A program made the position numbers and the translations under genes. Under the pieces are notes generated by a model. That model was not told where the DNA came from and ran no database searches. It saw only the letters and a list, made by a program, of their open reading frames with translations. Below are positions 28,601 through 39,000 of a DNA stretch of 64,000 nt, piece by piece; position 1 is the first letter of the stretch; the number at the start of each line of letters is the position of its first letter. Source of the DNA: Macrostomum lignano. Its lineage: Eukaryota. The stretch is taken from positions 62,001 to 126,000 of the forward strand of contig NIVC01001569.1 of the NCBI GenBank assembly GCA_002269645.1, given 5' to 3'.

Positions 28601-31600
28601 TAGCAAACTCGGATTAGCAAACTTGGATTAGCAAACTCGGATTAGCAAACTCGGATTAGCAAACTTGGATTAGCAAACTCGGATTAGCAAACTTGGATTA
28701 GCAAACTTGGATTAGCAAACTCGGATTAGCAAACTTGGATTAGAAAACTTGGATTAGCAAATTCGGATTAGCAAACTCGGATTGGCAAACTTGGATTAGC
28801 AAATTCGGATTAGCAAACTCGGATTGGCAAACTTGGATTAGCAAACTTGGATTAGCAAATTCGGATTAGCAAACTTGGATTAGCAAACTCGGATTAGCAA
28901 ACTCGGATTAGCAAACTTGGATTAGCAAACTCGGATTAGCAAACTCGGATTAGCAAACTTGGATTAGCAAACTCGGATTAGCAAACTCGGATTGGAAACT
29001 TGGATTAGCAAACTTGGATTAGCAAACTCGGATTAGCAAACTTGGATTAGCAAACTCGGATTAGCAAACTCGATTAGCAAACTCGATTAGCAAACTCGGA
29101 TTAGCAAACTCGGATTAGCAAAAATTCGGATTAGCAAACTCGGATTAGCAAAAATTCGGATTAGCAAACTTGGATTAGCAAAAATTCGGATTAGCAAACT
29201 TGGATTAGCAAAAATTCGGATTAGCTAACTCGGATTATCAGAAATTCGGACTAGCAAACTCGGATTAGGAAACAAACTAGAGGATTCGAAAATCTAGATT
29301 TAAAAACTTTAGTAAGTTAATCTTAAGTAATAAATGAGCAAACTATTTGATCACCCCAATCGCCAGTCCGAAGGCTTCTCAACCGAGGACATCAACGGAC
29401 GCTGGGTCGGCTTCTACCCCGAGATTGTCGGCGAACTTTCTCGGCGACTAAATTTTCAAGCCACCTTCAAACGCGTGAGCGACGGCCGATATGGCAGTTA
29501 CGACAACCAGACTGGCCGGTGGGACGGCATGATCGGCGACGTGTACAGCGGCGATGTGCACTTCGCCGCGGCGCCCCTCACCCTGAATGCGGTGCGCGAG
29601 GAGTTCGTGGACTTCTCACACGGTGTGCTCAACTTTGGCTTAGTGGTGAGGCCTCCAGGATACTGCTCCCACAGGGTGCACTGCGGCCCTGACTTTGTAA
29701 TCGTCGGACATTACACCAACTAACTCGTATTAGGGCACCAAATACTCTTAAGCAGCCCGGTTGTCAATGTAAACATTTTCAGGTGGTCGCCAAACCGGCC
29801 AAGTGGGTCAACACGGCCGTAGTTCGGGATGCCAAGTTTTTCCTGCGCGTCTTCGACCTGGGCGTCTGGCTGGCCTCTGGCGGGGTGTTCCTGCTGACCG
29901 CTCTGCTGCTGCACTACAATGGCAGGTGAGTGAGTGAGTGAGTAGCGAGTGAGTGAGTGAGTGAGTGAGTGAGTGAGTGAGTGAGTGAGTGAGTGAGTAG
30001 CGAGTGAGTGAGTGAGTGAGTGAGTGAGTGAGTGAGTGAGTGAGTAGCGAGTAAGTGAGTGAGTGAGTGAGTGAGTGAGTGAGTGAGTGAGTGAGTGAGT
30101 GAGTGAGTAGCGAGTAAGTGAGTGAGTGAGTGAGTGAGTGAGTGAGTGAGTGAGTGAGTGAGTGAGTGAGTAGCGAGTGAGTGAGTGAGTAGCGAGTAAG
30201 TTAGTGAGTGAGTGAGTGAGTGAGTGAGTGAGTGAGTGAGTGAGTGAGTGAGTGAGTGAGTGAGTGAGTAATTAAACTAACCAACTAATAAGTCTATCTG
30301 TACATTAATGAATCAACTAATCAAATAACAAAAAATCTGTTAATCTATCAATTAACGTAGTATTCGAAAAATCAATCAATCCGCTCGCCCCCGCACCCAG
30401 GTACAATCCCCGCGAGAACGGATCTGCCGTCAGCGATGAGTTGCGCTGTCAGAATCGGCAGCAGCGCGGCGGGCCGCCGGTCCGACCCGCCACTCTCGGC
30501 ATCGTCGGTGGCGAGTCTGGCGACGAGGATTTCGACGGTGGCGCCAGCGGCGGAGCTCCCGCTGTGGGCGGTCGAGTCTCCTTTGTGCAGACCGTATTCT
30601 ACGTTCTCAGTACCGGCTGCTACCAAGGTCAGGGTGTCACTCTGTTCGCCACTCTCTTTCCGTCACTCTTTTATCCGTCACTCTCTATCTGTCACTCTAT
30701 CTGTCACACACCATCCGTCACTCTCTGTCCGTCACTCTCTATCCGTCACTCTCTATCCGTCACTCTTTTATCCGTCACTCTTTTATCCGTCACTCTTTTA
30801 TCCGTCACTCTTTTATCTGCCACTCTCTATCCGTCACTCTCTATCCGTCACTCTATCTGTCACTCTCTATCCGTCACTCTTTTATCCGTCACTCTTTTAT
30901 CCGTCACTCTTTTATCCGTCACTCTTTTATCTGCCACTCTCTATCCGTCACTCTCTATCCGTCACTCTATCTGTCACTCTCTATCCGTCACTCTCTATCC
31001 GTCACTCTTTTATCCGTCACTCTCTATCCGTCACTCTTTTATCCGTCACTCTTTTATCTGCCACTCTCTATCCGTCACTCTCTATCCGTCACTCTATCTG
31101 TCACTCTCTATCCGTCACTCTTTTATCCGTCACTCTCTATATCTGTCACTCTCTCCATCACTCTTTATCCATCTCTCTCCGTCACTCTTTTATCTGCCAC
31201 TCTCTATCCGTCACTCTCTATCCGTCACTCTCTATCCATCACTCTCTATCCGTCACTCTCTATCCATTACTCTCTATCCGTCACTCTATCCGTCACTCTA
31301 TCCGTCACTCTATCCATCACTCTCTATCCGTCACTCTATCTGTCACTCACCATCCGTCACTCTCTATCCATCACTCTCTATCCGTCACTCTTTTATCCGT
31401 CACTCTCTATATCTGTCACTCTATCCATCACTCTTTATCCATCTCTCTCCGTCACTCTTTATCTGTTACTCTATCCATCACTCTCTATCCGTCACTCTAT
31501 CCGTCAAGCTACCTTTAACCGTCTATCCGTCACTCTATCCGTCACTCTATCCGTCACTCTATCCGTCACTCTATCCGTCACTCTATCCGTCTAGACAAGA

Positions 31601-36012: not shown

Positions 36013-39000
36013 TTAGGCAAGCTCGTCCGGAATATTTTCAACTGGCTGGGATTCCTTCTGCTGCTGCTGCAGCTGCTCAGACCGACGCTGATCGGAGTAG
36101 GACAGCGACCGGAACGAGGGCTCGTCGTCTGGCATATTGCGCAACACCTGAGCGTGCTGGATTGATGGTTGAAAACGTCAGTTGATAACTGCTGTCTTAT
36201 GGGGATTGCGGATTCTCTAGTTTTTGTGTCTGTCTGTCTGTCTGTCTGTCTGTCTGTCTGTCTGTCTGTCTGTCTGTCTGTCTGTCTGTCTGTCTGTCTG
36301 TCTGTCTGTCTGTCTGTCTGTCTGTCTGTCTGTCTGTCTGTCTATCTGTTTGTCTCTGTTTGTCTCTCTCTGTCTGTCTGTCTGTCTGTCTGTCTGTCTG
36401 TCTGTCTGTCTGTCTGTCTGTCTGTCTGTCTGTCTGTCTGTCTGTCTGTCTGTCTGTCTGTCTGTCTGTCTGTCTGTCTGTGTTTCTGTCTGTCTGTCTG
36501 TCTGTCTGCCTGTCTGTCTGCCGCACGCAGTGAACTCACGCGGCTCCTGGCAGTCCTGCTAAAGATGTAGTTATCAACAAAGGTAAGCGACAGCGCCACT
36601 AGCACCCCAAGGATGTACAGCACCAGCACTCCGCAGAAGGTTTTCAGCGTGATCGGCAGGCTGTCGCGGAACATCCTGGCCAGCTCTTCGCCGGCCATGT
36701 TCAAGGCCATCACAGAGTCGGGTGTAGTGGAATCCCCATCTGACTGGTGCTCCCGGCAGGTGGACATCTGGCCGCCAAAATATTGCCGGTAGGCCTGTCT
36801 GATGAAGCCGGACTCCCTCATGCTCAGCAGCTGCTCATTGATGCTGTCTCTGAGCCTGTGCCCGCTCTCGGTCTGGTTGAAGGCCAGGGCGTAGCTTCGC
36901 TCGTTGAGCAGAGTGCCCACCACCACCAGCTTGCAGCCACTCCTCTTGGCGTAGAAGTCAGCTGTGGGCGACTCCATGATGCCCAGGTAGTGAGACGAGC
37001 TGTTCACGATCTCAATTAACTGGCTGGTGTTGCGAACTCCGTTAGCCAATTTCGGATCGTTCTTAGCCGCAGAGCTGCTCATATTGCTGAACATTCGAAA
37101 CAGCGGCTCCTTTGATGTCCGCATGAAGGCGTCGGTGCTGCCGCCGGTGATCCAGACTGGCACGGCCGACTGCATCGCGCTGGAGTCCAGCTGGTACTGG
37201 TCACGGGCGTCCAGGTAGGCAAAGTTCTCGCTGTATGTTGAGCCGCTGGCCACCAGGGCGCACAGGAAACCCGCCGCGTAGGTGGCCGAGAAGATGCCGG
37301 CAAAAATCCACCACGTGACGCTGAGGCAGCGGCCAGCCAGCGATTTCGGAGACTTCTCGTAGCCTGCGATTGGTTGTTTGATGAGCATCGCGCTTTCTGC
37401 ACTTTTCGAATACCTATTCTAGATGGCGATGATTTTGGATTCCAAGTTCAACAAGCAGGCTTTAGTTTAGATCTCCGGTTCTAAAAATTCTGAACAATAT
37501 TTTCAGATTCTGAGAGTCCTCAAAAGACGGTCACCGATTCCTAGGATCCTCAAAAGTTGGTCACAGGTTCTGAGAAACTACAGAAGACGGTCACAATTTC
37601 TAAGAATCCTTGAAATGTGGTCACTATTCTGAGAATCCTCTAAAAGTGATGACAGATTTTTAATAAGAACGCTCAAAAGTCAGTCACTTGTTCTAAGAAT
37701 GATTAAAAGTCGGTCACCGATTTCAAGAATCACGGAAAAATGTTGTATAGATTTTATGAATCCTCATAAAGTGACCGCAGATTCTAAGAATCCTCATAAA
37801 GTGACCGCAGATTCTAAGAATCCTCATAAGGCAATCACAGATTCTAAGAATCCTCATAAGGCATTCAAAGATTCTAAGAATCCTCATAAAGGGATCACGG
37901 ATTCTAAGAATCCCCAAAAAGCGATCACAGATTCTAAGAATCCTCAAAAAGTAATCACGGATTCTAAGAATCCTCAAAAAGCAATCACAGATTCTAAGAA
38001 TCCTCAAAAAGCAATCAGAGATTCTAAGAATCCTCAAAAAGCAATCACGGATTCTAAGAATCCTCAAATGAAATACAGATTCTAAGAATCCTCAAAAATC
38101 AATCACGGATTCTAAGAATCCTCAAATGAAATACAGATTCTAAGAATCCTCAAAAAGCAATCACGGATTCTAAGAATCCTCAAATGAAATACAGATTCTA
38201 AGAATCCTCAAAAAGCAATCACAGATTCTAAGAATCCTCAAAAAGCAATCACAGATTCTAAGAATCCTCAAAAAGCAATCACGGATTCTAAGAATCCTCA
38301 AATGAAATACAGATTCTAAGAATCCTCAAAAAGCGATCACAGATTTTAAGAAACATCATAAAGCAAAAATTAAAGATTCTAAGAATCCTCCATGCATACA
38401 GGAAGTCAGCTGCTCACCCTGGAAGCAGCCGGTGCTCAGCGTGTAGTAGGCGCATCCGGCCAGACTGAACTGATGCCTCATCGTCTCCCCGGACCCGGCC
38501 GAGTTGCCGCCAGAAGCTGACTGAGCCGCAGCTGCCGACCCGCCGCTCGAGGCGGCATGCTCAACCAGCCTGGCCTGCGCCTCCTGCGGATTCCTTCGGT
38601 AGTTGAGATGCAGCAGCAGGCTGGTGACCAAGAAGACAGCCATCCCCGTGCACCAGACGCCGGCGTCGAAGACGCCCAAGAAGAAGCCGATGCCGCGGCT
38701 GGCGTGCTGGCTTAGCTTCTCCGGCCGGCGGATCAGCACCACCAGCCCGACATCAAGCAGTTCGTGCGAGAAGTCGACGTGAGCGTCGCGTAGAGCTGTC
38801 ACCTGGATGATTGGATGATTGATTGATTGATTTATTGATTGGTTGATTGATGGAATTGTGACTAGATTGCTGATCAATGGAGAAACATTAACTGATATTT
38901 CTACTATCAGTAGAGTAGTTTGTACGAAAAAAATAATTTTACCAACTACTCTACTGATAGTATCCCGCTTTGATTGTGCGAATTCCCATTTAGATCGTCA

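Follow-up and report, generated by a model that had tools for sequence, protein, structure and literature searches.

We analyzed a 64,000-nucleotide stretch of the genome of the flatworm Macrostomum lignano (herein the window; GenBank assembly GCA_002269645.1, contig NIVC01001569.1, positions 62,001 through 126,000, forward strand), which is eukaryotic, intron-containing DNA and holds two genes of the ionotropic glutamate receptor (iGluR) superfamily, herein A (+ strand) and B (− strand). The two are convergent, lying tail to tail with stop codons at 32542 (A) and 36013 (B), and in both the tip of the re-entrant pore segment M2 and the gate in M3 depart from the canonical sequences. The product of gene B, spliced from a chain of six exons on the − strand, is identical at every residue to PAA66314.1 (BOX15_Mlig015393g1, 558 aa); this protein runs from a signal peptide straight into S1 and on through M1, M2, M3, S2, and M4 without an amino-terminal domain (ATD), and no Pfam match to ANF_receptor (PF01094) was found. 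For gene A, four clear exons were defined from splice sites and translation. The whole convergent locus is present a second time in the same assembly (L005, contig NIVC01000010.1) in the same layout, with B″ annotated as PAA94385.1 and A″ unannotated; every exon there is intact and aligns with the window gap-free at 96 to 99% identity. The features of the two genes, in window coordinates, are as follows.

29367..29645, +, gene A S1 exon; Pfam Lig_chan-Glu_bd at 71.8 bits, 97.8% ungapped match in the second locus; 5′ boundary provisional (acceptor cgccag, exon opening with TCC)
29571..29582, +, gene A APLT, in the S1 exon
29595..29597, +, gene A Arg of VREE, in the S1 exon
29783..29925, +, gene A M1 exon (VVAKPAKW...LLLHYNG); splice sites, translation, second-locus match
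30401..30627, +, gene A exon for the 57-aa M1-M2 loop and the M2 pore helix; phase-1 donor within the Gly codon of QG; same exon in public model P0007 at 100% identity
30606..30627, +, gene A pore tip LSTGCYQ(G); Gly codon finished at 31632..31633
30628..31631, +, gene A intron past the pore tip; nearly all 14/26-bp minisatellite (30636..31591)
31632..32542, +, gene A last exon with M3, S2, pre-M4, M4, a short tail, and the stop; translation, second-locus match
31712..31738, +, gene A M3 gate TYSGGFLCA, at the SYTANLAAF position
31856..31870, +, gene A GGSTD, in the last exon
32021..32023, +, gene A Glu of VMEAP, in the last exon
32288..32314, +, gene A ARMFRGSIP, pre-M4, in the last exon
41444..41450, −, gene B coding exon 1, coding part only (ATGGCAG), GTAAAT donor; the exon chain equals P0005 exactly
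39979..40064, −, gene B exon 2, signal peptide and first S1 strand; from the exon chain
39395..39625, −, gene B exon 3, S1, ending in APLT (39406..39395); from the exon chain
38418..38802, −, gene B exon 4, end of S1, M1, 40-aa loop, and M2; phase-1 donor within the Gly codon of QG
38790..38788, −, gene B Arg of LRDA, in exon 4
38418..38439, −, gene B pore tip LSTGCFQ(G); Gly codon finished at 37363..37362
36540..37363, −, gene B exon 5, M3, S2, pre-M4, and M4; from the exon chain
37257..37283, −, gene B M3 gate TYAAGFLCA, at the SYTANLAAF position
37145..37131, −, gene B GGSTD, in exon 5
36974..36972, −, gene B Glu of IMESP, in exon 5
36680..36654, −, gene B ARMFRDSLP, pre-M4, in exon 5
36013..36156, −, gene B exon 6, cytoplasmic tail and stop codon; from the exon chain

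The seven coding nucleotides of B exon 1 are followed by a 1.4-kb intron, mostly (GATA)n, and the second-locus copy of the gene opens with the same 7 nt, with GTAAGT as the donor. A phase-1 intron within the Gly codon of the pore-tip QG is common to A (30627/31632), B (38418/37363), and the unlinked paralog P0006 (12671/14296 in L003); the remaining intron positions are unlike among the three, S1b, M1, and M2 forming, for example, one exon in B and three in A. Nearly every intron of A and B is filled by its own micro- or minisatellite (30628-31631, 37364-38417, 39626-39978, 40065-41443, and 29926-30400), with units of 14/26 bp after the M2 exon of A, 30 bp after that of B, 11 bp, (GATA)n over 1.3 kb, and (GTGA)n, and the lengths of the arrays are unequal between the two locus copies. 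A further 2-kb minisatellite of 14-bp units (about 27284-29273) lies directly upstream of the gene A exon at 29367. Gene B is annotated at both locus copies, and the public models of A are all fragments or chimeras. The second-copy models of the UniProt/WormBase type are chimeric: P0001 and P0008 each run on into an antisense translation of the convergent neighbor; P0007 joins upstream + strand exons (2804-17287) to gene A; and P0001 omits the entire M2 helix through a weak donor at 30570/30571.

Domain content, predicted fold, and ligand contacts identify both products as iGluR-superfamily subunits, in agreement with an earlier annotation of this DNA (herein the sequence-only reading). Pfam detects Lig_chan-Glu_bd (PF10613; 71.8 bits in A, 78.5 bits in B), Lig_chan (PF00060; 35.4 bits in A, 50.9 bits in B), and SBP_bac_3 (PF00497), which extends from S1 to S2; together they describe a bilobed S1/S2 domain split by the channel domain. 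The AlphaFold2 model of B (mean predicted local distance difference test score, 81) has the topology M1, pore helix, M3, M4, with helices at residues 155 through 178, 222 through 233 (pore helix), 245 through 278 (M3), and 476 through 518. Foldseek matches it to the ligand-binding and transmembrane domains (LBD-TMD) of AMPA/kainate receptor chains (probability 1.0, E = 3e-27), and the nearest solved sequences are the LBD-TMD of GluA1/GluA2 (E = 6e-36). The amino acid contacts Thr, Arg, and Glu (columns of GluA2 T480, R485, and E705) are all kept in A, B, and the paralogs P0006 and P0002; Gly-Ser-Thr (columns of GluA2 S654/T655) is found in A, B, and P0002, where P0006 reads Ser-Asn-Thr, and the cysteines of the S2 disulfide are intact. 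A and B thus share LBD-TMD fold and topology with GluA1/GluA2 (e.g., 9nr7, 7oca), and the alignment of the latter with B is gap-free at PLT...R, GST, E, the S2 disulfide cysteines, PRSL(A/S)GR, and WW. Identity is only ∼22%, however, and GluA1/GluA2 carry an ATD that B does not have. Lacking this domain, A and B are not AMPA-type in architecture, a feature absent from the sequence-only reading; among the hallmarks of canonical AMPA, kainate, delta, and NMDA receptors, the ATD is missing from B, and both SYTANLAAF and a Q/R/N residue at the pore tip are missing from A and B.

The unusual pore tip and gate are present in both genes, VLSTGCYQG with TYSGGFLCA in A and TLSTGCFQG with TYAAGFLCA in B, at positions that the sequence-only reading gave correctly to within a base. 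HMMER aligns B with ‘wfslgafm[q/r]qgcdisprslsgri’ of GluA1/GluA2 without a gap from the pore helix to M3. Because the alignment is gap-free, Phe235 of B (Tyr in A) falls on the Q/R/N column and TY(A/S)(A/G)GFLCA falls on SYTANLAAF; the proposal of an aromatic residue at the Q/R/N site is therefore upheld. In the AlphaFold2 model Phe235 lies just past the pore helix, where the chain passes into coil, which is the location of the AMPA receptor Q/R site. At +4, A has Ser, B has Glu, and P0006 has Arg. Relative to GluA1/GluA2, FMQQGCD is replaced by GC(Y/F)QG(F/Y)(S/E), SYTANLAAF by TY(S/A)(G/A)GFLCA, and the M1-M2 loop is longer.

Just one of the nine SYTANLAAF residues is kept in A and two in B. 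Mapped on GluA2, the gate has Ser/Ala/Thr instead of Thr617, Leu instead of Ala621, Cys instead of the lurcher Ala, and Val instead of Thr625, at positions that we take to be pore-lining; Leu at gate position 7 and Cys at the lurcher Ala are found in every member of the Macrostomum clade described below. Position 4 or 5 of the motif is Gly and presumably lies near the M3 gating hinge, going by the structural literature on AMPA receptors. The sequence-only reading had also described long, Gly-rich M1-M2 loops. Both loops are long, and that of A is rich in Gly (57 aa, 13 Gly), but the 40-residue loop of B, with 6 Gly and 23 of 40 residues Gly, Ala, or Ser, is better called Ala/Ser/Gly-rich; the loop is shorter in P0006 and nearly missing in the gene model of P0002. 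Ahead of M4, all four Macrostomum paralog groups carry the segment (E/D)xLARMFRxS(I/L)PxTL without variation, and it is unlike that of canonical receptors. In AMPA receptors the pre-M4 segment packs against the gate; in the Macrostomum proteins this segment and the rebuilt M3 may have co-evolved.

The second copy of the locus allowed selection on these motifs to be assessed by Nei-Gojobori counts. A ratio of nonsynonymous to synonymous substitution rates (dN/dS) near 1 had been named in the sequence-only reading as the result that would speak against it; the ratios found were 0.156 for gene A (11 nonsynonymous, 22 synonymous; p = 2e-7) and 0.158 for gene B (17.5 nonsynonymous, 34.5 synonymous; p = 2e-10). 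From M2 through M3 there are three synonymous and no nonsynonymous changes in A, and two and none in B, both motifs being identical in both copies. Four of the 16 amino acid differences in B fall inside the 40-residue M1-M2 loop, which thus looks weakly constrained. The two contigs may be homeologs or uncollapsed haplotypes, and in either case the synonymous excess indicates constraint. With dN/dS at 0.16 in each gene, no amino acid change from M2 to M3, and linker plus M3 the most conserved region among the paralogs, the motif pair is not a product of decay, in line with what had been argued.

Database searches show how narrowly the motif pair is distributed. The best matches to A and B are all M. 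lignano proteins, and searches of a database clustered at 90% identity likewise yielded M. lignano proteins alone, with no ortholog elsewhere; in an exhaustive profile hidden Markov model search of 1.84 billion representative proteins, only M. lignano proteins score above ∼250 bits, followed by matches at 235 bits and below. That search adds one close transcript, P0013 (run DRR639055), in which the tip (STAALQS) and the gate (AYLAALLMG) are both different. The M. lignano proteins form four paralog groups (A; P0002/P0003/P0009; B; P0006/P0011), united in a neighbor-joining clade with 93% bootstrap, or 94% with P0013 as sister. Overall the paralogs are ∼40% identical, rising to 69 to 71% in linker plus M3 among A, B, and P0006; in pairs with gene A every other region is 21 to 58% identical, and the M2 segment reaches 73% for B and P0006. 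The motif pair is common to paralogs A and B, as previously noted, and in the sequences available so far appears confined to M. lignano. A and B are old paralogs and a lineage-specific pair, which taken alone is an ordinary finding.

Two observations concern the other paralogs. The A-like P0002/P0003 are 62% identical to A and have, in the gene model, a very short M1-M2 loop together with an M3 (AYAGGFLCT) of the clade type. P0006 stands outside any convergent iGluR pair; its nearest annotated neighbor (L003 1-3896, −) is a DEG/ENaC (Pfam ASC) channel gene.

In the neighbor-joining tree the Macrostomum clade falls inside a set of 54 sequences, all without SYTANLAAF. Its near neighbors come from nemerteans, molluscs, annelids, and one brachiopod (Lineus, Tubulanus, Aplysia, Babylonia, Owenia, Dimorphilus, Liolophura, and Lingula), with a few ATD-bearing hemichordate proteins further out; examples without an ATD are Aplysia californica XP_005107294.2, Babylonia areolata XP_076442666.1, Lineus longissimus XP_064645071.1, Tubulanus polymorphus XP_074654246.1, and Lingula anatina XP_013389125.2. 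SYTANLAAF is missing from 58 of the 143 closest non-Macrostomum proteins, and 50 of these 58 carry a hydrophobic or aromatic residue in the Q/R/N column (across the 58: Leu 22, Trp 19, Phe 3, Ala 3, Asn 3, Gln 2, Arg 1, other 5), against Gln in 63 and Arg in 6 of the 85 relatives with a canonical gate. The ligand contacts persist in these variant relatives (Arg 58/58, Thr 47/58, Glu 52/58), and fewer than 100 residues precede S1 in 44 of the 56 non-Macrostomum variant sequences of the tree set.

These spiralian short receptors resemble A and B in size (∼450 to 520 aa), in being mostly ATD-less, in keeping the ligand triad, PRSxxGR, and WW, and in having a noncanonical M3; they share a tip of Ser-Thr, then hydrophobic or aromatic, then Gln-Gly-(Tyr/Phe), and they group with the Macrostomum clade by neighbor joining, weakly at depth. 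Their tips follow x-S-T-x-x-(W/L)-Q-G-(Y/F) (e.g., WFTTSTLLWQGYTRGP in Aplysia and WFVLSSIMWQGYTRAP in Babylonia), with M3 sequences such as YIASMTNFL and YTASLTNML. Identity with B is only 22 to 28%, and the details differ: the tip is usually (L/M)(W/L)QG against GC(Y/F)QG in Macrostomum, and M3 reads Y(T/I)AS(L/M)TN(F/M)L against Y(A/S/T)(A/G)(A/G)FLCA. The family as a whole thus has the tip S-T-x-x-(W/L/F)-Q-G-(Y/F), of which S-T-G-C-(Y/F)-Q-G-(F/Y) in Macrostomum is a local form. As the relatives almost never have Q/R/N and none has SYTANLAAF, the noncanonical pore and gate are a family trait and not a singular anomaly. The sequence-only reading had treated the departure from near-invariant motifs as exceptional; as stated this is not supported, since the premise is true only of canonical AMPA/kainate/NMDA-type receptors.

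Short (ATD-less) receptors of this kind have been named ionotropic receptors (IRs) in gastropods (PMC12837371), and Ramos-Vicente et al., in building a metazoan iGluR phylogeny, left out any sequence that keeps fewer than four residues of SYTANLAAF (PMC6307864), a threshold that sequences of the A/B type do not reach. For the nearest Aplysia relative (P0017), none of 20 published AcalIR reverse-transcription PCR primers matches its 20-kb locus with three or fewer mismatches, and the literature searched yielded no functional data for any member of the spiralian short variant family. No paper mentioning Mlig015393, Mlig002294, DRR639055, or XP_005107294 was found, and none of the papers naming both Macrostomum and glutamate receptors concerns A or B, judging by title and abstract.

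Arthropod IRs offer a parallel in architecture. Like A and B they are protostome variant iGluRs; their tuning subunits are ATD-less, Q/R/N is not kept, and lineage-specific expansions are typical. The ligand-binding domain is usually described as their divergent part: the work of Benton (2009) and Croset (2010) reportedly found that most tuning IRs have lost at least one of the Arg, Thr, and Asp/Glu ligand contacts, a loss said not to be typical of the coreceptors IR8a and IR25a. A and B show the reverse pattern, with the triad intact and the pore and gate rebuilt. In IRs the region said to have stayed closest to iGluRs is the pore (PMC7882480). Tips of the IR8a/IR25a type read TPQGGGE, and in the Croset alignment Pro occupies the Q/R/N column of Drosophila IR8a; despite this pore proline, IRs are reported to form cation channels (PMC7882480). 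Plant glutamate receptor-like proteins (GLRs; AtGLR3.x) have Phe or Tyr at the Q/R/N site and a divergent SYTAxLxxx and are ligand-gated channels (PMC12226733, PMC11479355). Their aromatic filter residue is like that of A and B by functional analogy only, as plant GLRs carry an ATD and belong to another eukaryotic lineage, and no plant GLR is among the named members of the best 150 profile matches. Given the IR8a and plant GLR precedents, a residue other than Q/R/N is not enough on its own to predict that a pore is dead or leaky.

On balance we consider A and B to be, probably, selectively maintained, IR-like, amino acid-gated channel subunits whose pore and gate are a lineage-specific version of a family-wide variant and not in themselves exceptional. 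Such subunits would assemble as tetramers; as they have no ATD, they may, like tuning IRs with IR8a/IR25a, depend on an ATD-bearing partner in order to assemble or be trafficked. An α-amino acid would be bound through the kept Arg, Thr, Glu, and Gly-Ser-Thr contacts, and its binding would open a cation pore. The filter entrance is predicted to be a ring of Tyr or Phe preceded by Cys, with Ser (A) or Glu (B) at +4, and the gate to be formed by Leu at position 7, where GluA2 has Ala, and Val at position 11, where it has Thr. Polyamine block in canonical receptors depends on Q/R/N and the acidic +4 residue (PMC12226733), from which block is predicted to be weak, absent, or subunit-dependent here, and divalent-cation permeation may be altered. 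Unusual selectivity or gating is thus possible.

Several points count against this interpretation. The intact triad is unlike that of most tuning IRs, and the statements on ion selectivity and the gate rest on residue chemistry. The place of the clade among the variant receptors is fragile: bootstrap values are 41% or lower above the P0013 node, deep nodes are weak, and the position inside the variant group could be long-branch attraction. In P0002/P0003 the pore tip is three residues shorter in the public gene model (AVCATVRCQG, ending TVRCQG), so the M2 motif is not invariant in the clade unless that model is mis-spliced. Gene A has no GenBank annotation at either locus copy, and a 5′ exon for its signal peptide and first S1 strand was looked for in three ways: among ATG-initiated hydrophobic open reading frames (ORFs) with donors between 10 and 29.4 kb, in all three frames of 24.4 to 29.4 kb, and by low-stringency tblastn with the N termini of three paralogs. 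Nothing convincing was found in any of them. Conservation with the second locus cannot single this exon out, because unique noncoding DNA is already 93 to 98% identical.

An alternative that we regard as unlikely is that the aromatic filter and rebuilt gate make a qualitatively different channel, whether a leak channel, a ligand-inhibited channel, a nonconducting modulatory subunit, or one of unusual selectivity. It gains from how little of SYTANLAAF is left, with Cys at the lurcher Ala and Leu at position 7 throughout the clade, from the purifying selection on the motifs, and from the clade-invariant pre-M4 ARMFRxS(I/L)PxTL, which, given the packing of this segment on the AMPA gate, suggests a co-evolved gating module. 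It loses in that the ligand triad and S2 disulfide cysteines are intact, as an agonist-gated receptor would have them, and to our knowledge none of the residue changes in A and B is one known to cause constitutive opening. Similar departures, moreover, occur in all 58 variant relatives, and in Drosophila IRs and plant GLRs as well, both of which reportedly work as ligand-gated cation channels (PMC7882480, PMC12226733). A stronger version of the idea, which we think distinctly improbable, would have the Macrostomum clade be a functionally new iGluR pore type, defined by the Cys-aromatic ring, the Leu/Val gate, the Gly hinge, the lurcher-position Cys, and a co-evolved pre-M4; were it true, a canonical amino acid-binding domain would be coupled to nonstandard permeation or gating (e.g., monovalent-only, redox- or metal-sensitive, constitutively active, or ligand-closed).

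That one or both genes are decaying or nonfunctional is very unlikely. The suspicion attaches chiefly to A, which has no recognizable 5′ exon upstream of 29367, where the 2-kb minisatellite lies, is uncalled in GenBank, and is represented by fragmentary or chimeric public models; yet its four exons are open and gap-free in both copies, and its dN/dS is low. For B a pseudogene was rejected, the six-exon model being complete, annotated at both loci, and duplicated with dN/dS 0.16. Least credible of all is a K+-channel-like (GluR0/AvGluR1-type) or anion-permeable filter in place of a nonselective cation filter: the iGluR pore does derive from a K+ channel pore (PMC11479355) and the tip Thr-Gly-x-aromatic-x-Gly loosely recalls TxVGYG, but STGC(Y/F)QG is out of register with TxVGYG, on which ground the K+-like filter was rejected, with Gln and not Gly after the aromatic residue, aligns gap-free with AMPA FMQQG, is clearly derived from the relatives’ STxx(W/L)QG(Y/F), has no basic residue in the filter, and stands in a protein with an M4, unlike GluR0.

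Elsewhere in the window, an ORF at 56750-57376 (+) matches Pfam TEX33 (testis-expressed 33; E = 1.6e-14), and an exon near the window end at 63463-63783 (+) matches Cation_ATPase_N (E = 1.2e-12); a P-type cation pump gene probably begins there.

A and B are newly recognized members of a kind already known, the lineage-specific, ATD-less variant iGluRs. With them the spiralian family of short variant glutamate receptors, which has been little studied, gains a flatworm branch; its members pair an apparently ordinary amino acid-binding pocket with a rebuilt filter and gate, and such sequences are excluded by the SYTANLAAF criterion of at least one large iGluR phylogeny (PMC6307864). In M. lignano the two proteins are candidate amino acid chemoreceptors or atypical neurotransmitter receptors. 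Once expressed and recorded, they would show how far the pore of an iGluR can drift and still be compatible with gating and conduction.

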